Source: Podarcis bocagei (taxonomy: Eukaryota). Taken from it: a stretch of DNA of 64,000 nt. The position numbers were made by a program, and so were the translations under genes. Below are positions 1 through 46,280 of the stretch, piece after piece. The notes under the pieces are model-generated. The model made no database searches, was not told the origin of the DNA, and saw only the letters and a program-made list of their open reading frames with translations. Every line of letters starts with the position of its first letter. The first letter of the stretch is position 1. Location of the stretch: the NCBI GenBank assembly GCA_964188305.1, contig OZ076887.1; one strand, 5' to 3'.

Positions 1-222
1 TAGGTTGGGTTAACAGTCCAGAATAGTATTTGATACAGTAATTGTGGGTGAAGACAAGATTTACTCATCTATGCTAAGCTGGATTTTTTATTTTTACCTT
101 GAAATAGTGTACCATGAACTCTGCTGCATTGCTTAGTACTAGTTAAGCAACCATAATTTCACTGAAAAGCATTCTCTTCCTTAGTTTTGTACTTAAAGCT
201 GTTGTGTGTTTTTTTTTTCTAG

Positions 223-288
223 GAGAACGACATGACTGTGATAAAGAACTTTAGTAGAATAGACAATTTGTATAAGATGGAAGCAGAG
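223..288 (+). CDS. IRAK1BP1: IRAK1BP1 (SIMPL) internal coding exon, 66 nt, ENDMTVIKNFSRIDNLYKMEAE
   Basis: Polypyrimidine tract + AG at 221-222; peptide resembles recalled human AENITVTKDFRRVENAYHMEAE; ends at non-canonical GAG|GCAAGT donor; in frame with next exon. Confidence 0.88.
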
Positions 289-1251
289 GCAAGTGTCTTA
301 AGTATGAGTATTGGTCATGTGTCTCAAATACCCATATAGATATATATCAAGGGTGAAAATGGTTCCAGACTCATACATTACAGTATTACTGCTTGTGGTT
401 ATTTATATATTATCTTTTTTGCCATCCCACTCCTGAAGTATTTTCCTGCAATACCATCTTAATAGCCTTACAAAACTATGTCAGCATCACAGCACGCTTG
501 ATAATGAGGTACTGGTGTAGTTATTTATGGAAGCAGAAATTGAAACATCTACCAAATTTACAATCCAATCCTCAAAACATTCATATGGAAACTAAGAAAA
601 GCTTTCTTTATGTGAATTGTGTATAGAATTGCAGCCTTGGATCTAGGCATCAATCCCATACATGCTTATCTGGAAGTCTTATTGAACACAGTGTAGGGTA
701 GTTGTTGAGCTTTTTTTTTTTTAGAAAGGCCCAAAAGTTTGCTTTTTTAAAGGAAGCCACTGAAATTGTTGAGCTTTTTACAAAAACGCCAAGATGTCAA
801 TTCCAGACGTTTGACATCCCTAACACAACGGGACTTCTCATGCAGGATTGAATTGTCTTAAAATATTAGGAGCATGTTGATGTGCGGTTATAAACTAGGG
901 GTTAATATTAATTTCCTGAATGTCTTTCCAATTCTGCAAATTCATTGCTTCTCCGTAGTTGGTTCTACAAAACGATTGTCATTCTAAAAACTTGAATATG
1001 ACAAAAATTGTCTGCTTTAATTCCATATAATAATAAGCATACAGATATGAGTATTTATTATATATTGCTGAAAGCTATGTAAGCCACATTGAGCAAAACT
1101 TCCTCTGTACAGAGGTAGCATATAAATGAAAGTATAATCTAATTTAGCTTTGTACAAAATGCATATTATAATTGATTTTGTATTATTCATCTTTACCCAA
1201 TTTTTAGCTAAGACACTAAAAAGGCTTGCAAATTTTTACATTCCCATATAG

Positions 1252-1382
1252 GTCTGCATTACATTCAGTGATTTCGGCAAAATGCAAGACGTCTGTAACT
1301 TCCTTGTTGAGAAGCTAGGTAGCTCTGTTATCATCAGCCCACCTCACTTTTACCATACAGTGGAGGCAGTAGATGCCCTTCG
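1252..1382 (+). CDS. IRAK1BP1: IRAK1BP1 coding exon, 131 nt, VCITFSDFGKMQDVCNFLVEKLGSSVIISPPHFYHTVEAVDALR
   Basis: AG at 1250-1251, GTAAGT at 1383; SIMPL-domain peptide. Confidence 0.92.
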
Positions 1383-1965
1383 GTAAGTTATGTCTTCCTC
1401 CTTTTACCAGAAAGTTATGTCTTGCTAGCTTGATTTACCATTGCCATGCCTCTGGAAATCTGTTCTCTAATAAGTAGCCAAAGCTTCTATTTTGTTGACC
1501 AGTCCAAGAAAACAGCTGGTGGAATACACATGTTCATATAGATATGGCTCGTGCATAATAGTAAACCATTTATAAAATAAATGATGGTTTAAATTGAATG
1601 TGCTAGTGCACACAGTTGGAAACTGCAGGTGTTTTACTTTTGTCCTGTTGCTGGAAAACAAGCTGCATTATGTAAGAATCCAAGCTCATCTTTTGTTTCC
1701 CCCAAATAAACCATGAACAGTAAACCAAGAACAAACCTTGATTGCTACTCGTGACTTGGAGAGAAGCAGACCAGAAGCACTAAGCCAAGCCATGGCAGGA
1801 GCAAATCCCCCATGGAAGAGGTTGATATAATATTAAAGTAGACAAAAAAACGAAACAAGGCTCCATATTCTTCTGAAGGTTCTAAATTGGAATGTATCAT
1901 TAAGATGACAAATCATTCAGTCAAGCACCCCAATGCTGGTACATGAATAACCGTGAAATCCTGTA

Positions 1966-2181
1966 CAGTCATACCTCGGGTTGCGAACACTGTGGGTTGC
2001 ATGTTTTCGAGTTACGGACCACGGCGAACCCGGAAGTACCGGAACGGGTTACTTCCGGGTTTCAGCGCATGCGCAGAAGCACTAAATCACGCTTTGCAGA
2101 AGCGCCAAATCACGTCATGCGCGACGCGGGTTGCGAACGTGCCTCCTGCACAGATCACGTTCGCAACCCAAGGTTCCACTA
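1966..2181. mobile_element. Non-autonomous Tc1/mariner (Tigger-like) MITE
   Basis: TA|CAGTCATACCTCGGGTTGCGAAC ... GTTCGCAACCCAAGGTTCCACTA imperfect TIRs; CpG-rich with an internal palindrome. Confidence 0.7.
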
Positions 2182-2349
2182 CTCTCAGTAAAGTGGGAAC
2201 AGGATTGCAGCCTATGAGGAGGAGAAAGCCAGCCTAAGAAGAGATGAATGAAAATAAATGCAATCACATATATTTTGGCTTAGTTTCAGAGTTTTGCCTG
2301 TCTGGTATGGAAAGGTTGAAATGACAGTGCATGTATATAATAGCCACTG

Positions 2350-2428
2350 GAAGACAGGAGTGCCTGGCGTGCTCTGGTCCATGGGGTCACGAAGAGTCGG
2401 ACACGACTGAATGACTAAACAACAACAA
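2350..2428 (+). mobile_element. Bov-B/RTE LINE 3' terminal fragment
   Basis: GCCTGGCGTGCTCTGGTCCATGGGGTCACGAAGAGTCGGACACGACTGAATGACTAAACAACAACAA tail; flanked by an imperfect direct repeat GTATATAATA..CCACTG. Confidence 0.8.
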
Positions 2429-3241
2429 GTATATAATAACACCACTGAAGTGTATAAAGGCCTTGATTCAGATCTGAAGCATAAAGAACTATTAAACTGT
2501 TGAACGGCAGCAGCACGGTCTGTGAAAGCATGCAGTTGGTAAAACTTTCAAAGAGTGAATATAGATCAATGGTATCAAAGGGTAGGGCAGCTAACACTTC
2601 ATGCAAAACGACACAAAAGTTAAACGTTGCCTGTGGGAGAAAATTAAATACTTTTCCATTAGTTTGTTACATGTTTATTAACTGTTAACATATCAGAGCA
2701 GGGGAGATTCCACCACCAGCATACACCTCACTCTGGGCACAATGAGCTGGTTTTTGCTTTTTGCTCTGGAAAGAAAAGACAAATTAACTCTGTTCTGTGT
2801 GAGATCGGAACTTTATTTGCCTTTCTCAGCCTTTGACAAACTTACATTGGATTTCCAATCTGACATGGAACATGTGTGTTGTTATTTTTCACAACAATGT
2901 AAACTGGTGGAGTGGGGGAAGGGGGTTAATTTAGTTGTTTAAGTTGCATAAATTTTAAATGTCGTAAAATGGGGGAGGGGATAACATCACTGAATATATA
3001 GAGGCTGAAATCCTACACTGATACCTGGAATTAATCTCAATGAACTCAGTGACATACTTTTGGGTAGATCTGTATAGGATTGTACTGTTAGTTGCTTTGT
3101 GAAGGTCTTTCTCATTGAAAAGCAGAGTATACAGTGCTCAAAAGTAGGTACTACATTGGTTAACGGTTTTAATTGACACACTCCCTTTTTGTTGCTTTAA
3201 TTAGCTAAATCTTCTCATTTGTCTTTGTTTTTTTTTTGCAG

Positions 3242-3524
3242 ACGTCAGGTTTGTCTTGCTGCTGTTGGGAGTGCCCGGCAAAAAGCTCAAGAAGTTTGCC
3301 AGTTGCTTGGCCAGCCCCTTGGGAAGCCTTTGCTAATAAGGGAAGAGGAAGTGAAAGAGTGGGAGGGCCACCTCGAAAATCACTTGGCCAATGCCCCAGA
3401 CTCACTGGGTTTGCAGCAGAGACTCCAGAGTGCCACCATCTATGTTTCCTCAAGGGTATATGCTGTTTTTGAAATAAAGGGGGAAAGGAAGAGAAAACAA
3501 GCAGCTCACATAAATGTAAACTGA
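3242..3524 (+). CDS. IRAK1BP1: IRAK1BP1 last coding exon (RRQVCLAAVGSARQKAQEVC...FEIKGERKRKQAAHINVN*)
   Basis: T-rich acceptor CAG at 3239-3241; ORF 3219-3524; matches recalled IRAK1BP1 C-terminus; known tail-to-tail synteny with PHIP. Confidence 0.93.
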
Positions 3525-3810
3525 TTCAATACTGAAGTCCGGAATCATTGTGTTTTCCTTTGGGAAGAACATTATTCTTAGGAAGCTTAACTAGCTTTTC
3601 CTTAATCAAAATGTTAAAGTGACTCTGACGTTTGTTCACTTTTTAAACGATTCCATGAAATTGTAGCACAGGTTGTAATTCTCTGGACTTGGACGCAAGC
3701 TGTGGCTTGGATCCCAATTTACGTTTCATTTCTTGGAAGAAAACTTCTTGCCATGAAGAAGCCCTCGTGTTCATAGAAGACACTTTCCATTATCAGCAGC
3801 TCCTTCCATG

Positions 3811-3816
3811 AATAAA
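3811..3816 (+). promoter_or_regulatory. Candidate IRAK1BP1 polyadenylation signal AATAAA
   Basis: First AATAAA downstream of the stop codon; usage unverified. Confidence 0.3.
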
Positions 3817-6800
3817 ACAAACTTTGGAATCAACCTAGTGAATGCTTGTGATAGCCAGAGATACAAGTACATTTTTAATATACTGTTTAGAATAATTCTT
3901 AATGGCTGATGACAGAAACCAGTTTTTTTTCCAGTGTTTTACACTGGACAAATTGCATTTGGTGAAATGCCACATTGTCAGTGTAGTTCAAGAAATCTCC
4001 GTTGAGAGTAGTTTTATCAGGGGAGAAATTCCTTGGATGCCAGAAGCTCCTGGCCTTCAAATATAAGGATGTGCATTTACTGTCTGACATGAGAAATTTC
4101 TCAAATATAACCAGTCTGAGTTAAGAAATTATGAATAAGAGACGGAAATACTGTAAAACTGCATTGTTGCTGAAAAACTTGCTAATTTTTGGGTGTTGGT
4201 GGTGAGACTAAGCAAGGTGTTGAGTGATTTCTGCTTGAATAGTTTCACAGATTAAGGAATGCAGTTTAAACAAAAAGGATAGAACTTACAACTCTGCCTA
4301 TAGTTTCTTAATCTCCAATTTAATAAAATTCTAACTTTCCAACCTGCATGAACTATTCACTCTTTGTATTTCATCTGCAGTTTGCTATTTTTGTGGAATT
4401 TATTCTGGCTTTGCTAATGTAAGGAAGCAAGGTTATGGGGGCGGGGCAGCTTTTCCTAACAAGGAAATAATGCAGATGTTTTTCATTCTCCTAGCCCAAC
4501 ACAATGTCCATTTTATATTATAGTATATTATCATACCTGCCTATGCACCTGTTAAGAATAAGTGCCTTCAGAAAGAAAGTTGATCACACATCTCTGGATA
4601 ATAGAATTTGTAAGGCTGTCTCACACATGTAGTGATGGTAGTAAAATTTACCAGTTCCATTGGAGCATTTGTATTAAGAAACTAAGTTACTCTTGTTGCC
4701 AATCAATATCCTTTATATTTAAGTCATTAAGGTTGCAGTCCTGTAGAAACTTACCTGGGACTAAGACTCGTTGAAGTTGATGGGGCTTATTTTTGGGTCA
4801 ACATAGGATTGCAGTATGGTGAAAGTTTTTAGACACAACTTGTGTACTTCACACATTTATATTAGTTTAATAACAAAAGCAAAGCAGCTTAGAAAAACGA
4901 GTTTTCTATTTATTTAAAAATAGGTTTGTAGTTACTACATTGCAGTGACAGTAATTCATACACATACATTCTAGTTTGTATAAAAGGATTCCAAGTATTA
5001 TTCATCAAAACCAACGTAAGTGTTTCACATAACAATAAAAGTTTCGATCAATATGTACAAAAAGAAAGGGCACTGTTCATCCAGGTGTGAGACTGCACTT
5101 TATAACTTGATAAAGCAGAAGAGAAAGAAAATAACCTTGATAAAACCTAAACTTGTAAAACTGTATGTTGGTTACATGAACATTTTTGGGATTTACACCA
5201 TACTGTACAAAGTAAGCAAAGCTTTAAAATGTGTCAGTTTCAAAATTAGATGTTCCAGACAATTTCCTTAAGTCACACTACATTATATGTTTCAACATTA
5301 AGTGGCAAGATTTAAGGTATTCACTCAATAACTTTCTTTTCAATTTTTGCAGTGTAATGGTCCAAAAATGTAACTTCAAAATGTGTGTCAATAGCCTATC
5401 CTTTTTAAAACATGCATCTGAGATAAATATACCATGTTAAATGTCTTATGTGAAAGTGTAGAAATTTGGTGCTGTATCTTTAAAGGTGTAGTCATTTCCA
5501 GCACTAATTATATCATGAACAAAAATTTATACCATATCATGAAGCAATTATCTGCATTTATTTAAAATTCAAATATTCAGCATTTGGCTCCCTTTTTGGT
5601 ATCAAAAGAAAAATGTTTTTTTCATATAAATAGCTCCTTAAATTATTTACCCTTTAAAAAAGGCAAATTTGGGGTTTGGTCTTTAACAGCAAATATTATG
5701 CTATTTCCATCTTCAAAATGCCATCTCACATCTACGGTACTTTAACAAAAAATATCCTGAAATAAATGTAACCTTCCTGAAACAGAGGGTACCTTTTATT
5801 CCAAAATGTTGTGAACTAAATGGGAAAATGAGAGCAACAAAATAATTTTCTGCTTCACCATTATTCCAAGAGTAATTATGTAAAGTTAGCACATTTTAAA
5901 AAAAACACAATACCAGATTTTGTTATATTAGAAATAATTTTCAGACTTGGCCACTATATATGAAATGTACACCTTTTTTGAATTATAAACATATGTACAT
6001 TATTTACAGCAGAAACTGGACAGCCCTTTTATTAGATGAATGCTTAGGTCCAAGAAAGAACATGAAATGCAAGATTGATACATCAAAATTTACAACAAGG
6101 CTCAATCCAGTCGGTCCCTTACACACACTAGGACACAGCTGTCCCACAAGTGCACCTCTCCAGTTGTGGGAAGTCTGATGGCCGGTGTGGGTGAGATGGA
6201 TGGCAGGAAACTCCTGCATGCCCTGAGGATGCAAGGTACGACTGGATTGTGGCCTTAAGCTTTCATTAAATAGACCACCAGGAGCTCTTGCTTCAAAGCA
6301 AAGGATCCACATTCTTCAGCACAGTAGGATCAACTCTTTGCAGAAATCAACACACTTAAGAGCTGTGTGTATGGAGTTCTAGTTGGGGTCTTAGTATCAC
6401 TTTAGATGTACTAAAGCTCATGAAACTGAAAGCTCAAATTGGTATTTCACAAAGAGTCGTAACACAGCACATGACTTATGTACTGAAACTATGTCCCCAT
6501 TCATTTTTAAACGTTGAGAAGTACTACATGCTTTTGAATCGGTATTTTACAAAGATCAATCCAAACTAAGATAAAGTATTAAAGAACTGAATTAACCACA
6601 AATGGAAAAAATTGACAGTATGGTACGAATAATTTTGTGCAAGTTTACATCACAGCAGTACTATAGGAAGACAGGTTTTGTAAAGCTGCATCGCTACTCA
6701 TACCACAATGATAAAGATCATTTCTTCAGTACCCAGTATTATACCAATGTAATTCAAGCTTAATCCCTGGGAAACAATTAAATTTCAAACCCGCTTAGCC

Positions 6801-8890
6801 AAACAAGGGATTGATTACTGGAGTGAAAATGAACTTATTTCCCAATCAAAGAAAATGGAATGTGCTGCTATCAGACATCGTTGTATAGTAACCACTGGTT
6901 AATATTGAAGTAATTTAATGTTCAGCATTATGGAACTAATGGACCGCTCTGTATCAGAAGCTGTATTCAGTAGACTGCATTTTACATTTGTTTTCATTAC
7001 TGCCAAGTTTGTAAGATAATTGCTTGTGTGAATATCTGTAATTACCAACAGAAAGAGTGTCTACATAGTATTTTCCATGTAAATGTGCCATAAAATAAAT
7101 ATTACTTTGCTCTCAATAGTTTTATCCATAACACATTTCATTATGGTTTCTCCCTCCAAAAGTTAGTGAACCAGTATTTATTGCTTATATTAAAATGTGC
7201 TAAATCAAAAGCTCTTCTGTGTTGGTACAATAAATTTTTTGCAAATCGGTCAAATCTAACCAATGACAGTAATTTAAGTCAAACCAATGCAATTTACAGC
7301 ACTTATATAGTATATTTAGCACAATTACAGTTTTAAGTGTTTCTACACAAATGTATTACCAAAATAATGTTAGGAAAAAATAAGCTTGTGAATTCTTAGT
7401 ACAAAATTATTCATGAATGGGGAACAATACATTTGTGTACTGCAAATAAGACTTCGATTCTTTTGTTCTGAAATGTGTAATTTTCAGACACTATGATGGT
7501 GATGTGTACTATTCCATTCTCCAACGTTACATAGACATACTTGATGTATACAAGTATATACATAAATATATGCCAAGTGGGACATAGTTATAAATGGAGT
7601 AACTTACAGCAATGGGGTTTCATGTTTGCTTTGCCAAGTTCTTTTATATAACAATGCAGATAACAAAAGGAAATCACACATTTGAAATTGATTGCCTTCA
7701 TCAACAGTGAAATTCTTAAATGGACAAGATAAATCTACTGTAATGCTTCCATTGTGAAATGAACTATCACTGTACATAGGCTGCTGAAATATTTTCATGT
7801 TTAATGTCTGCAATATTAGTAAGAATGCATGTTTAAAAACATAAGTCAGTGTCCCAAATCCCATAATTATAATATGCTAATGAAAATAGGTATCCAAGGA
7901 GGACTAGTGCCAGTAGAATTTATTATTCTACTGTAAATCATGATTTGGCAAATACTCTTAGTTGAAGATATTTTCTTAAAAGCCAAACCAATATGGGTTA
8001 TTTAGAGGAGATGGTGATGGCAACTAACCAACCAAAACAGAATCTTCCCTGCCTCCAAACATTCTAAACTGGCCTGATCATAACGTCGATTAGTCTACTT
8101 CAGATAAAAGTGAATTATCTTGATGTTTATGAGTATTTGTGATAAAATCAGAAATGCATTTTAAGAACCAACTGCCATGGACACAAATGGATAAAAGATG
8201 CATATTAATCTTGAACCTCATACACCATCCACTGCGAGCAACATATGTGCACTAATTGAGTATCATGTTGCATACATAGCTGTGTTGCATACATAGTTCC
8301 TGAAGTTGCTTCCACCTGCAGTCCTCAAACCTGGACTGGAAACTACATATTAACACAGACTGTCAATGTTGCCAACATGGTAGACACACACAAAATGTAA
8401 GGTAATTGGTGCCGTCAACCTAGCTGTTTGGAGGGTAAGGATCTGGATATAACCTCCCATGCTTCCACTGGTGGTGGGGGGGAGGAGAATGTTAAAGGGG
8501 CTGCTTTTCCACCTCTCCAGATTATTGGCTCTACCATGTTGGCAAAACACAGCTAAACCTTCGGTTACGTGAATATAATACTGGTAACAACACACACAAA
8601 ACGTCAGGCTGTTTGTGACTATGCAACTTCTTTTTCAAAATCAATTCAACATGTAATATAAAATATCACAAGATGCAATTCCATAAATCAAGAGAACATA
8701 TTCTGATAAAGTCCAATGGATGGTCGGGAGAGACAGTCCATTCAGTTGTAAATTTGGCAAACAGGAAATAACCACGGCACGGTATGCTTAACCTGTGGCG
8801 TTCCACACCTCGCTGCTTTGAGGATTCTAGCGTTCTAGTGTTCCTTACATGTAGGTATCAGATGGAAAGCTTGAAAGTATGGAACGAAGG

Positions 8891-8941
8891 ATTCCGGGAC
8901 AATACCTTGTTTCGCCCCATCAAGCTTTGTCAGCCGTGAAT
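8891..8941 (-). ncRNA. Type I hammerhead ribozyme motif (G8A variant), sense to PHIP
   Basis: Minus strand: AUUCACGG CUGACAA A GC..GC GAAA CAA-GGUA-UUG UC CCGGAAU; helices I and III pair and the GUC site is present. Confidence 0.65.
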
Positions 8942-8994
8942 ACTCATAACTCTACCTATTATGTTCCATGTTTTTGGCACACAAGAATATGAAT

Positions 8995-9045
8995 ATGCAC
9001 GGCTGACGAAGCCAGATTGGGCGAAACAAGGTATTATCCCGGAAT
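8995..9045 (+). ncRNA. Type I hammerhead ribozyme motif, antisense to PHIP
   Basis: CGG CTGACGA A GCC-AGATTG-GGC GAAA CAA-GGTA-TTA TC CCG; core intact, C15.2-A16.2 mismatch in helix III. Confidence 0.7.
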
Positions 9046-11156
9046 CCTTATCGTGCCATACTTCCAAGCTTTCCATCTGATATCTACATGTAAGAAGCAC
9101 TAGAACGCTAGAATCCTCAAAGCAGCGAGATGTGGAACACCACAGGATAAGCATACCGTGCCGTGGTTATTGCCTGTTTGCCAAATTAATAACTGAATGG
9201 ACTGTCTCTCCTGACCATCCACTGGACTTTATCATAATATGTTCTGTTGATTTATGGAATTACACATTGTGATATTGTATATTACATGTTGAATTGTTTT
9301 TGAAAAAGAAGTTACATAGTCACAAACAGCCTGACGTTTTGTGTGTGTTGTTACCAGTATTATATTCACGTAACCGAAGGTTTAGCTGTGTTTTGTCAAC
9401 ATGGTAGAGCCAATAATCTGTTTGGAGAGGTGGAAAAGCAGCCCCTTTAACATTCCCCCCCCCCCACCAGTGGAAGCATGGGAGGTTATATTCAGATCCT
9501 TACCCTCCAAACAGCTAGGCTGCCGGCACCAGTTATCTTTTGAACAGGTATGTATACATCTGCATCTCTAGATTGAGGCTTACTTCTCCCAATGGGTGTT
9601 AAATGAAAAGTGTGGTTACATTTTTGTACCATGCAACTGTTTAAAGATGTATTTTGTCTTCTTTTAAACTGGACTATACTTTCAAACAATAGAAATTGTA
9701 TTAAAGTTTGTTTTAATACAAACTTTGTTTTAAAGGTATAAAATAAGTAAATGTACCATAAACAAATAAATAACTGTTTCTTTTTCCATAGCAGTACATA
9801 CAGCAATACATTCCCCTAAGTCATATAGTCATTTACAATAGACAACTTAAGTTTACTAAAGATGCACAAAATAATAGACTACAAGGCACAATCATTAAGT
9901 GGGATTTTCCTTTAGGGTGTATATATTGACTTATGTCAGCTTGATAAGTACACTGTAAAAAGTGCAGAAAAACAATGTGCAATGAGAACACTGTATAAAA
10001 CATGATTGCATAAAAAGTGATTTGGCCTTTTTATCTTTAATAATTGAAAATAACCAATCTTCCCCTTAAAATAAAAGTATGACATTTTAAATTTTTATCT
10101 AGTATTATCTAAAAAGTCCTGAAAAAAATTATTCCTGGGTAATATTGTATATATTTATGTGCTTGTGTACATAATATATACATACACAGACACTTTTTAA
10201 AATTTTAGTCAGTTTTAACACAATTTGTATAAACAATCAATCTGATCGCATCGTAAACATAAGAATCTCACACTTTTCCTGCAGTTTCCTTGAATCCTTT
10301 AACCCAATTATACATTTTGCCTAAGGATCCCACCAGTGCATTAATTGTTTTTACTACAAAGTACCAGTAGAGATAATTTTTCAGAACAGTGTATATTTAG
10401 AACATAGATTCATAAGCATAATTGAAAAATGTATGCTGCACTGACACTAAAAACTTTTCTACTGCACCGGTTTTCAGTCTTTGGCACAATAAACAGAGAT
10501 TTGATTGATACGAGAATGAAGGTCTGAAAAATTAGACATATTAGTCAAACTTTTTCCAATGTGGATATATATATCTACATAGTGTGATTTTTCTCTCTGG
10601 CTGAACCTAAATAAACCAACAAGCTGCACTAGGTTGGTTTGTACAAAGCTGTGTGCCCAATTACTACTGAAATTAAACATCTTATTAGCAATGTTTGGAA
10701 TTTTGCATTTGTTCTCAATGGCATTTACTGCCACACTCTGCTAATATCCTGCAAAACACAGATACTACACTCTATACAAATGTACTGTACCTTGCTCATT
10801 CAAAAATAGGAGTTCTGTTCTCAGTCTGTTACATTAAAAATTCTATCAATTTTAATCAAATAGAGGTTACTGACTGTCCAAAATTACAGTAACATTTCTG
10901 CAAATCAAGAATTTCCATTTATACAATCTTCAATACCAACTGAACAAAGTGAATTGAAATGTATAACCTACTTGGAGGGCAATAAATAGCAAAAGTTTAA
11001 AATACATACTTCTTTCAAAGAAATGTTCAGTTTGTTTTTGCTATACTTTTTCCAAATCAGAACGTATTCTCATTTGTAAATAGCAGCAGAAAGCGGATAT
11101 CCTTAGTTCTACCACTTCCTCAGCTGTACCTGTTTATTAGCATTTTTAAATGCTGG

Positions 11157-11833
11157 TTACCAACCAATGAGATTAGCCTTTGCTTTTTCAGTCAACTTGC
11201 GGACTCTGCCTCTGCTAGATGTCCCAAAAGTCAAAGAGGTGTCTTCAAACAATAGTTGTCTTTGCTCCTCCTCCGAGTCATCTTCATTGTAAAAAGCTGT
11301 CCTCCTACCCTGATTTCTAGTTCTCATGTGGGGTTCAGAATCTTTAAGTTCTTCATGCTCTTCTTCAATAGGTTCATCTGTCTTTTTTCTCTTGCTTCTC
11401 GTCTGAATCTTAGGATCTGCAGAAAACGTAAGTTCTAATCCTGGCTCTTGTGCCTCTGGCTTTCTTTTAGGCTTTCTGCCTCCACGCCCTTTTCTTTGCA
11501 ACAAGTCTTCCTTCACATTATTTTCAGAGAGAGAATTGCATGCAGTGGAAACAGATGCTTCCTCTGGTGGTGGTGGTGGTGGTGGTGGTGGTGATGTTAA
11601 GTCTTTAGTAGTCTGGATTGTGTTCTGCCCTAAATTCTTTTGCTGAGCAAGTAATAGTTTTTTTGGTTTCCTCCCTCTTTTCTTGTGCACCACTTCACAA
11701 CTATTGTTGTTTGTTTCAATCTTGGGTTTCCGTCCAGGACCCCTCTTAAACATAGGCTTTGAAGACTGTCCCCCATGTCCATTTACCTGGATGCTTCCTG
11801 ATGCCAAAGCCATGACATTATTCTTGCAATCTG
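11157..11833 (-). CDS. PHIP: PHIP last coding exon (exon 40)
   Basis: Ends ...[22 protein letters not shown], the recalled PHIP C-terminus; TAGCAG tandem acceptor (start 11833 or 11830). Confidence 0.96.
11565..11591 (-). repeat. (CCA)9 coding microsatellite encoding a poly-proline run in PHIP exon 40
   Basis: (TGG)9 on the + strand; translates to S-P9-EE. Confidence 0.9.
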
Positions 11834-15693: not shown

Positions 15694-15891
<198 letters not shown>

Positions 15892-43759: not shown

Positions 43760-45718
43760 CCGTATTTTTCGCCCTATAGGACGCACCGGCCCATAGGACG
43801 CACCTAGTTTTTTGGGGGGGAAATCAAGGGAAAAAAATTTATTCCCCCCCCCCCCCCAGGTTTGCGCAGCCATCCCCAAGCTAGAAGAGAGAGACAGAGC
43901 GCTCCATCTCCCTCTTCTGCCTTCAGGGACAGCATCTCTAGCCTCCGTGGGGCAGCGGCTTGCCCCGCTGTCCCCCGAGCTTATAGGGCTGGCGATGGGG
44001 AGAAGCAAGCTTGCTTCTCCCCCCGCCAGCCTCCAGATCAGGTCCGGGAATAGCGGGGTGGTGGCGCTCTGCCTCCCCGCTATCCCCCGAGCTTGTGGGG
44101 CTGGTGGGGGGGGGAAGCAAGCTTGCTCCCCCCCAAGCCTTCAGATCAGGTCAGGGAATAGCGGGGTGGCGGCGCTGCGCCTTCCTGCTATCCCCCAAGC
44201 TTATGGGCTGCAGGCTGCTGCCTGCAAGCCTTGCGACCCCGCAGGACCTCGCGCCGGGATCCGGGGGGTGGCACGGAGCTGCAGGAAGCCCTGGAGCGCA
44301 GGCAGCTCCGCGCCACCCTCCGAAGCCCCGCGCAGCTTCGCGCCGGGATCGGGAGGGTGGCGCGGAGGTGCCTGTGCTCCAGGGCTTCTTGCAGCTCCGC
44401 ACCACCCTCCGGAGCCCCGCGCAGCTTCGCGCCGGGATCCGGAGGGTGGCACGGAGCTACAAGAAGCCCTGGAGCGCAGGCAGCTCTGCGCCACCCTCCA
44501 GAGCCCCGCGCAGCTTCGCGCCGGGATCGGGAGGGTGGCGCGGAGCTGCAAGAAGCCCTGGAGCGCAGGCAGCTCTGCGCCACCCTCCGGAGCCCCGCGC
44601 AGCTTCGCGCCGGGATCGGGAGGGTGGCGCGGAGCTACAAGAAGCCCTGGAGCGCAGGCAGCTCTGCGCCACCCTCCAGAGCCCCGCGCAGCTTCGCGCC
44701 GGGATCGGGAGGGTGGCGCGGAGCTGCAAGAAGCCCTGGAGCGCAGGCAGCTCTGCGCCACCCTCCGGAGCCCCGCGCAGCTTCGCGCCGGGATCGGGAG
44801 GGTGGCGCGGAGGTGCCTGTGCTCCAGGGCTTCTTGCAGCTCCGCGCCACCCTCCAGAGCCCCGCGCAGCTTCGCGCCGGGATCGGGAGGGTGGCGCGGA
44901 GGTGCCTGTGCTCCAGGGCTTCTTGCAGCTCCGCGCCACCCTCCAGAGCCCCGCGCAGCTTCGCGCCGGGATCGGGAGGGTGGCGCGGAGGTGCCTGTGC
45001 TCCAGGGCTTCTTGCAGCTCCGCGCCACCCTCCAGAGCCCCGCGCAGCTTCGCGCCGGGATCGGGAGGGTGGCGCGGAGGTGCCTGTGCTCCAGGGCTTC
45101 TTGCAGCTCCGTGCCACCCTCCAGAGCCCCGCGCAGCTTCGCGCCGGGATCGGGAGGGTGGCGCGGAGCTGCAAGAAGCCCTGGAGCACAGGCAGCTCCG
45201 CACCACCCTCTGGAGCTCCGCGCAGCTTCGCGCCGGGATCGGGAGGGTGGCGCGGAGGTGCCTGTGCTCCAGGGCTTCTTGCAGCTCCGCGCCACCCTCC
45301 AGAGCCCCGCGCAGCTTCGCGCCGGGATCGGGAGGGTGGCGCGGAGGTGCCTGTGCTCCAGGGCTTCTTGCAGCTCCGCGCCACCCTCCAGAGCCCCACG
45401 CAGCTTCGCGCCGGGATCGGGAGGGTGGCGCGGAGGTGCCTGTGCTCCAGGGCTTCTTGCAGCTCCGTGCCACCCTCCAGAGCCCCGCGCAGCTTCGCGC
45501 CGGGATCGGGAGGGTGGCGCGGAGCTGCAAGAAGCCCTGGAGCACAGGCAGCTCCGCACCACCCTCTGGAGCTCCGCGCAGCTTCGCGCCGGGATCGGGA
45601 GGGTGGCGCGGAGCTGCAAGAAGCCCGGGAAAGCCTGCATTCGCCCCATAGGACGCACACACATTTCCCCTTCATTTTTGGAGGGGAAAAAGTGCATCCT
45701 ATAGGGCGAAAAATACGG
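43760..45718. mobile_element. Non-autonomous Tc2/pogo-like DNA transposon carrying GC-rich tandem arrays
   Basis: TIR CCGTATTTTTCGCCCTATAGGACGCAC / GTGCATCCTATAGGGCGAAAAATACGG; TA on both sides (43758-43759, 45719-45720). Confidence 0.9.
44241..45626. repeat. 89-bp quasi-palindromic minisatellite, ~15.5 units
   Basis: Unit starts at 44332, 44421, 44510 ... 45578 with an 89-bp period. Confidence 0.97.
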
Positions 45719-46189
45719 TATTTTTAGAGATTTGGTCAACTTGAAAGTTGTCATGATCCTTTCACACACTAGGTACTAGATGCAAAGAGACTGCACAATA
45801 AAGCTGAACATTAAAAAAACACAGGTGGCTGAAAATTATCCTGAGAACTAGGATTACAATGATCATATATGCATAAAATCCAAAATTCTACTAACTTATC
45901 CAACACTTCAATCTCCCAGGACATTCTATATAAGATCTTAAAGTAGCTGTCTTATTGCAAAAGAATTTTAGACATATACTTGAAAGAGAAGTTGCTGAGT
46001 TACAACTCATTACCAAACTAAAAACTATGGAGATACCTGGTCTGAATAGAGATATTGGATTCATGTCCTATTATACATTCTAAATCTAATTTTGGTCATC
46101 TATCCCTTTAAAAATCCCTTGCCCTTCCCTGTGGAACCAACTGCTATCAGTAACAGTCATCAACAGTTATAAGGTTGCAGCGACCTCTG

Positions 46190-46280
46190 CTTCAGAGTAT
46201 CTGAAGAAGTGTGTATACACACGAAAGCTCATACCTAGAAAGCTTATACTTAGTTGGTCTTTAAAGGGCTACTGGAATTA
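46190..46280 (+). mobile_element. Penelope-like pLTR remnant with a minimal hammerhead motif
   Basis: GTAT CTGAAGA A GTGTG-TATA-CACAC GAAA GC TC ATAC, followed by TTAGTTGGTCTTTAAAGGGCTACTGG, typical of reptile Penelope ends. Confidence 0.7.

Follow-up and report, generated by a model that had tools for sequence, protein, structure and literature searches.

Penelope-like elements (PLEs) are retroelements whose insertions are strongly truncated at the 5′ end, and an inverted, 5′-truncated copy often abuts the 5′ end of the insertion (Craig et al., PMC8557442). The purified enzyme of the anole element Poseidon cuts and extends both strands of its target, with reverse transcription starting internally on the RNA, and the Poseidon promoter is thought to reside in the short pseudo-long terminal repeat (pLTR) just upstream of the hammerhead ribozyme (PMC11167929). 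Here we describe a fold-back of two arms of about 550 bp in a 64,000-nucleotide stretch of the genome of the lizard Podarcis bocagei (GenBank assembly GCA_964188305.1, contig OZ076887.1; the whole stretch is called the window below). The fold-back lies in the 3′ untranslated region (UTR) of the gene for PH-interacting protein (PHIP). Judged from its sequence, it is probably an old, dead, head-to-head insertion of a PLE or of a mobilised non-autonomous element, which has since decayed neutrally.

The closest described counterparts are the head-to-head insertions of the Penelope/Poseidon clade, including those of the anole element Poseidon_Ac (PMC8557442, PMC11167929). As in these, the two copies at PHIP are joined at their 5′ ends with the 3′ ends facing outwards, form a non-coding stub and have no clean target-site duplication. 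The hammerhead-like motifs of the PHIP arms share with Poseidon_Ac the extra nucleotide after A9, the G10.1-C11.1 pair and a likeness in stem II and the GAAAC segment. There are also clear differences. Past the hammerhead, the PHIP arms continue for about 535 nt, whereas Poseidon_Ac insertions end after about 115–150 nt. The PHIP motifs have a shorter helix II and carry a hairpin of about 25 nt that separates C15.2 from G16.2, a place at which Poseidon_Ac shows just the palindrome ACGU. No open reading frame (ORF) starts in their stem II, unlike in Poseidon_Ac.

A second comparison is offered by the retrozymes lacking long terminal repeats (non-LTR retrozymes) and PLE-derived hammerhead elements, which likewise comprise a non-coding unit of a few hundred nucleotides beginning at a type I hammerhead (PMC7229834; bioRxiv 10.64898/2026.07.22.740005). 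Consensus sequences of vertebrate retrozyme families measure 51–972 bp, and their exonic copies tend toward 3′ UTRs (bioRxiv 10.64898/2026.07.22.740005). Tandem head-to-tail repeats and circular RNAs are the defining traits of retrozymes, whereas the PHIP locus consists of two inverted monomers with no tandem copy.

Double-stranded RNA (dsRNA) formed by inverted repeats in 3′ UTRs is itself a well-described class. In human 3′ UTRs, inverted-repeat Alu pairs (IRAlus) are reported to bind STAU1 and can activate PKR (PMC7566578, PMC11978871, PMC3956526). The IRAlus resemble the PHIP fold-back in being two inverted retroelement copies with a predicted long, imperfect intramolecular duplex, which would occur only in the isoform that uses a distal poly(A) site. 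They belong to another element class and another host, and their arms are about half as long. An IRAlu pair arises from two insertion events, whereas the PHIP copies would stem from one. By analogy, dsRNA-binding proteins such as ADAR would recognise the predicted PHIP duplex incidentally. Most likely, the fold-back is an ordinary by-product of PLE insertion, and neither a new kind of element nor a demonstrated regulatory device.

Architecture of the fold-back

A blastn search of the 64-kb window with arm 1 (8399–8948) finds arm 2 (8988–9539) with 91.9% complementarity over 556 columns. Between the arms lies a spacer of 39 nt (8949–8987), which forms the loop of the predicted hairpin. These values confirm the inverted repeat that the initial annotation had described at the same positions, with about 90% complementarity and a spacer of about 40 nt. 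In a repeat search of the window, the fold-back appears as collinear inverted pieces of 89–95% complementarity that cover both arms. Global alignment of the arms yields 511 matches, 35 substitutions (21 transitions and 14 transversions) and 10 gap columns, corresponding to a Jukes-Cantor distance of 0.067. The self-repeat search and RNA folding that had been suggested as a check on the structure agree, since the RNA of 8380–9560 is predicted to fold into a single long hairpin of –937 kcal/mol. The longest perfectly paired run between the arms is 81 bp, and eight runs reach 20 bp or more.

The orientation of the arms follows from their hammerhead-like motifs. The motif of arm 1 is read from the minus strand and shares the sense of the PHIP mRNA; in arm 2 the element sense is plus, antisense to the mRNA. 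The hammerhead sense thus points outwards in both arms, so that the 5′ ends meet at the spacer and the 3′ ends face out. The two arms end about 15 nt before the hammerhead, with 0–39 nt between their ends, and the spacer may be a further 5′ extension of one of them.

Each frame of the arms is interrupted by at least four stop codons, so the arms lack coding capacity and do not represent the N-terminal portion of a PLE ORF. No coding sequence for a reverse transcriptase or a GIY-YIG domain was found in the arms or nearby. An ORF of 74 amino acids across the hairpin centre has no exact database record, and a protein search with it returned no relatives. Within the 64-kb window, blastn with arm 1 matched only itself and arm 2, and there is no third arm copy.

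Hammerhead-like motifs at the inner arm ends

At its inner end, each arm carries a motif that can be read by hand as a hammerhead. The motif of arm 2 (9001–9057, plus strand) reads GG-CUGACGA-A-GCCAGAUUGGGC-GAAAC-(AAGG..14 nt..CCUU AUC)-GU-G-CC. That of arm 1 (8881–8935, minus strand, mRNA sense) reads GG-CUGACAA-A-GCUUGAUGGGGC-GAAAC-(AAGG-14 nt-CCUU-C)-GU-U-CC. The order of the elements is that of a type I hammerhead, and helix II can pair over 3–4 bp (GCC/GGC plus A-U or U-G) in both arms. Helix III could form from C-G and A-U pairs together with AAGG/CCUU, and helix I has only about two contiguous pairs. Both arms have an extra nucleotide (A) between A9 and G10.1 and a G10.1-C11.1 pair that closes helix II (...A-G CC/CU ... 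GG C-GAAA). C15.2 and G16.2 are both there, split by a hairpin insert of about 25 nt whose centre, AUCCCGGAAU, is by eye a palindrome in 8 of 10 positions. Relative to arm 2, the helix III insert of arm 1 has a 2-nt gap.

Hallmarks of PLE hammerheads that were not imposed by the search descriptor of Cervera & de la Pena (PMC4209133) are the extra nucleotide between A9 and G10.1, the G10.1-C11.1 pair, the palindromic 15.2–16.2 segment and the shortness of helix I. Both arms show the first two. The consensus of Poseidon_Ac at its tandem junction, CUGAGGA-U-GCCUGC-CAUAGAU-GUGGGC-GAAAC-GUC (PMC11167929 supplement), provides a direct comparison. By eye, (A/U)GAU(G)(U)GGGCGAAAC is common to this junction and both arms, and the 3′ half of the junction, AGAUGUGGGCGAAAC, nearly matches AGAUUGGGCGAAAC in arm 2 and UGAUGGGGCGAAAC in arm 1. 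The GAAAC-GUC junction of Poseidon_Ac also fixes the register of the cleavage triplet in the arms.

In this register, each copy fails at one essential position. The core of arm 2 is complete (CUGACGA ... GAAA), and its position 17 is a G, which is non-cleavable (not H). Arm 1 has the cleavage triplet GUU and hence a cleavable position 17; its essential G8 is replaced by A (8928), with C3 unchanged (CUGACAA, 8933–8908 on the minus strand). Divergence at the inner arm ends, where the motifs lie, is if anything above the average of the arms. A search for the core CTGANGA-N(8–22)-CGAAA found two instances in the window where 0.19 were expected, a number reached by 3 of 100 shuffles; one of the two is 9003–9026 on the plus strand, in arm 2. 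In vitro, cleavage by PLE hammerheads is poor even when they are intact (PMC4209133). Probably, the motifs are relics of a Poseidon-type hammerhead variant and not working ribozymes. The initial annotation, which saw a type I hammerhead fold in each arm, was thus right about the CUGANGA...CGAAA core of arm 2; arm 1 has lost G8, and neither a match to an Rfam hammerhead model nor a hammerhead fold was obtained. Its further idea of an embedded ribozyme masked by the stem does not hold, as G8 is changed to A in the copy that reads in mRNA sense, and the second copy occurs in the mRNA only in antisense form.

The second core of the window lies elsewhere, in a PHIP intron (46190–46260, plus strand), and reads CUGAAGA-A-GUGUGU-AU-ACACAC-GAAAGCUC. 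With its perfect 6-bp helix II, an extra A after A9 and an AGCU palindrome, it is a textbook reptile minimal hammerhead. The sequence downstream of it, ...TTAGTTGGTCTTTAAAGGGCTACTGG, is reminiscent of a short interspersed element (SINE), and no inverted partner of the core occurs within 600 nt.

Insertion site and distribution among lizards

Orthologous loci were obtained by a protein search with the last PHIP exon, which led to genomic Logan contigs of other sauropsids (L001–L007). They were compared with the window in two separate runs, 1–9971 and 10033 onwards, so that 9972–10032 is omitted from the comparisons. Two mammal-like proteins that entered the protein alignment had no part in the comparison of loci. 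The flanks of the fold-back align, on either side, with three squamate loci (L003, L005 and L006) and with L004 from a more distant sauropsid, and none of the four has a match to 8399–9539. The other squamates sampled are thus without the fold-back; six closely related lizard species share at least part of it. The segment corresponding to the target measures about 465–470 nt in L005 (2727–3191) and L006 (5924–6396), and is poorly alignable even among the other squamates.

A multiple alignment tentatively indicates that the lacertid is without some 270 nt that L003, L005 and L006 hold between the conserved UTR blocks (8180–9600). Part of the target may have been deleted as the element inserted, although the segment is too diverged for certainty.

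To the left of arm 1 lies a junction filler of about 55 nt (8345–8398) that is unalignable to the squamate UTRs. Within the filler, 16 nt match the element exactly (8369–8384, TTGCCAACATGGTAGA), as the reverse complement of 8530–8545 (16/16, E 1e-4); they stand 15 nt outside arm 1 in the orientation of arm 2. This fragment is possibly a template-switch product of the insertion. Beyond the 16-nt exact match, there is no extended homology between flank and arm.

The DNA contig sets of six organisms contain 0.57–0.86 of the sampled words of 7900–10100, compared with 0.48 expected from the flanks alone. Word shares above this flank-only 48% imply that each of the six carries the fold-back at least in part. 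The divergence between the species, which we estimate from the word shares at about 1–1.5%, is below that between the arms, and the insertion should therefore predate the split of the six species.

A probable head-to-head insertion by a Penelope-type enzyme

We infer from the layout and the motifs that the fold-back arose in a single event driven by a PLE enzyme. In the sequence of steps we propose, the enzyme would have cut both target strands, and reverse transcription would have been primed from both ends on the same short RNA species. Both complementary DNAs would then have reached or neared the 5′ end of the short template RNA and been joined, one junction keeping a short scrambled filler and probably a target deletion of about 270 nt. 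The landing site would have been the least conserved gap of the roughly 6.3-kb PHIP 3′ UTR, 1.6 kb past the stop codon. Fixation would have preceded the divergence of the six closely related holder species, followed by neutral decay of about 3.3% per arm. Since the arms are non-coding, the template would have been a non-coding unit of about 550–590 nt starting at the hammerhead, and could have been a pLTR-type or a retrozyme-like non-autonomous RNA. The Penelope-like origin that the initial annotation had put forward is in line with the hallmarks of the motifs, their likeness to the Anolis Poseidon hammerhead and the head-to-head layout known from PLEs.

A number of results speak against this reading. 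No hammerhead family of Rfam release 15, Hammerhead_1 included, matches anywhere in the window at the gathering score; the Rfam hammerhead models likewise gave no match over 8200–9800 at E≤1, and none at E≤10 for 101-nt pieces of each inner arm end alone. The only Rfam matches at the fold-back are to microRNA-precursor models and are spurious, being caused by the hairpin. Minimum-energy folds of the 88-nt inner ends are not hammerheads, and their stability is no better than that of shuffles (z +0.59 and –1.54). Metazoan PLE minimal hammerheads have a helix II of 6–8 bp and a helix I of 4–5 bp, and a helix I of about 2 bp is known only from a D. virilis variant (PMC4209133); the 3–4 bp of helix II and the roughly 2 bp of helix I at PHIP fall below the typical values. 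No other arm copies came from the blastn search of the 64-kb window or from the protein search with the arm ORF, which leaves membership of a repeat family unsupported. A target-site duplication could not be defined by eye or by alignment to the empty sites, as the surrounding 470 nt or so are too diverged. The arm reaches about 535 nt past the hammerhead, compared with a reverse transcription start about 115 nt past it in the anole element, which suggests that the template differs from that of the one characterised PLE. Finally, transcription through the element is read from conservation and from contig sets that we guess to be RNA (see below). The missing reverse transcriptase and GIY-YIG ORF, on the other hand, is expected of a short stub or a non-autonomous element, and a PLE-mediated origin is still compatible with it.

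The host gene and its long 3′ UTR

WD40 and bromodomain exons are spread along the minus strand of the window. When the exons are compared singly, the bromodomain exon (15694–15891) matches the PH-interacting protein of the PDB with 106.8 bits, versus 94.6 bits for BRWD1, which bears out the initial assignment of the gene to PHIP. The ORF of the last coding exon (11157–11813, minus strand) ends in the C-terminus ...KANLIGW, with its stop codon at 11157–11159. Its database relatives are named PH-interacting protein, and it has no exact database record. On the mRNA, the fold-back lies 1.6–2.8 kb past this stop codon.

The 3′ UTR is conserved on both sides of the fold-back. Its proximal block (9599–11156, minus strand) has 82–88% identity with the squamate loci L003, L005 and L006 and 73–79% with the more distant L004, and the alignment with these loci that extends from the last exon stops at about 9599–9605 of the window. 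The distal part (4887–8179, minus strand) is collinear with L005, which extends 6.5 kb beyond its own stop codon, over 8179–8135 (89%), 7737–6660 (67%) and 6128–4887 (74.5%); similarity to L006 also resumes, at about 8174–8015. A distal poly(A) signal, AATAAA (4909–4914, minus strand), is nearly identical to L005 from about 120 nt upstream to 22 nt downstream, and similarity collapses at about 4887; the counterpart of 4887–4914 in L005 is 7150–7185. This near-identity followed by a collapse points to a conserved poly(A) site of a minus-strand transcript, and the site in turn to a PHIP 3′ UTR of about 6.27 kb that is conserved in squamates. The human PHIP 3′ UTR is of similar size. As far as the alignments indicate, the fold-back is inside this conserved UTR, in its least conserved gap. 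The placement in the PHIP 3′ UTR claimed initially, past the stop codon and within a conserved UTR ending at the AATAAA near 4890, thus stands.

Two further observations concern the gene. Within the conserved proximal block, at about 9712–9730 (minus strand), lies a 17-nt lacertid insertion that four other sauropsid loci are without. It resembles a small duplication of the neighbouring AAAACAAACTTTAAT and yields an ATTAAA about 170 nt upstream of the fold-back, which could be a lineage-specific proximal poly(A) signal. In a PHIP intron, 43800–45770 is a GC-rich minisatellite with long spurious ORFs in all six frames.

Probable presence in PHIP transcripts

Six small contig sets of one of the six lizards, organism F (77–162 million letters, from three studies), contain 0.43–0.46 of the words, versus 0.57–0.60 in DNA sets of the same organism. 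That these sets are RNA is a guess from the sequencing-run word search. Were they indeed RNA, transcripts would contain some three quarters of the stretch, including at least half of the fold-back words, and sets so small would hardly all cover a locus that is not expressed. It is likely, mostly on account of the conserved distal UTR, that the fold-back is included in some PHIP transcripts. In the long isoform of the mRNA, the two arms are expected to form an imperfect duplex of some 550 bp.

Age and decay of the arms

If the arms were identical at the start, each has changed by about 3.3% since the insertion. Neutral rates in squamates are, with some uncertainty, around 0.75–2.4 × 10⁻⁹ per site per year. 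The age of the insertion would then be of the order of 15–45 million years. The arms differ by 21 transitions; G-U wobble would accommodate 12 of them on the mRNA strand and 9 on the opposite strand (binomial p ~0.66). These counts reveal no protection of base pairing within the mRNA. Most likely, the fold-back is a neutral relic.

Alternative explanations

The same arms might have an origin outside the PLEs, as a local inverted duplication of host sequence or as an element bounded by long terminal inverted repeats, such as a DNA transposon or a fold-back element, in which case the hammerhead boxes would be there by chance. The lack of an Rfam hammerhead match, of any other arm copy retrieved and of sequence coding for reverse transcriptase or GIY-YIG within or around the arms would all suit such an origin, as would a core pattern that is only modestly unexpected, with 3 of 100 window shuffles giving two. 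However, the arm has no counterpart in the orthologous UTRs of other squamates and so is not duplicated host UTR, and there is neither a target-site duplication nor a terminal motif typical of DNA transposons. Chance also leaves the PLE-specific features beyond the core, the likeness to the anole Poseidon hammerhead and the location of the motif at the 5′ junction unaccounted for, and we regard an origin of this type as unlikely. Far less probable still is an assembly artefact, for example from a chimeric or fold-back long read. Palindromes are known to trouble assemblies (Craig et al., PMC8557442), but 35 differing positions and indels between the arms are unexpected from a single template, and contigs of six organisms, from several independent studies, exceed the word share of the flanks alone. 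The initial annotation had already judged an assembly fold-back improbable given the arm divergence; with some 8% between the arms, a simple artefact is excluded.

Another view accepts the insertion and holds that the stem has since been co-opted. In that case, ADAR, Staufen, Dicer or PKR-type proteins would bind or edit the 550-bp stem, which would be under selection and tune the localisation, stability or translation of the PHIP mRNA. It is placed within a conserved, long 3′ UTR whose distal end is strongly constrained, it has been kept through the divergence of six related species, and it retains a perfect run of 81 bp alongside eight runs of at least 20 bp. There is also the precedent of the inverted Alu pairs of human 3′ UTRs, with their reported STAU1 binding and PKR activation (PMC7566578 and PMC11978871). 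Yet the fold-back sits in the sole UTR segment that is not conserved among squamates, and other squamates do without it. The 35 substitutions and 10 gap columns between the arms show no strand bias toward G-U, and a fixed neutral insertion would be expected to persist anyway. Co-option is in our view improbable, and the more specific proposal that the stem has been retained in lacertids to modulate PHIP dosage, through editing, nuclear retention, Staufen or small RNAs, is slightly more doubtful again. For the undescribed regulatory module derived from a transposable element that the initial annotation had envisaged we found no evidence, given the position in the least conserved UTR gap, the absence from other squamates and the lack of strand-biased preservation of pairing. 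Were dosage modulation nevertheless true, reptiles would have in this stem a counterpart of IRAlu regulation that a Penelope-like element had built in one step.

Implications for PLE insertion and reptile dsRNA

Taken as a neutrally decaying head-to-head PLE insertion, the fold-back is of modest significance overall. It suggests that a single Penelope-type insertion can put a structure able to form a duplex of about 550 bp into the conserved 3′ UTR of a dosage-sensitive chromatin gene, and that such a structure can persist through a lizard radiation. Near-equal arms that end just upstream of the hammerhead fit the extension of both target strands by the PLE enzyme in vitro, and many such loci, when pooled, could map the 5′ ends of PLE template RNAs. 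For the lizards themselves, the locus would be a natural test of how reptiles handle long endogenous dsRNA, both in ADAR editing and in tolerance by PKR and MDA5.

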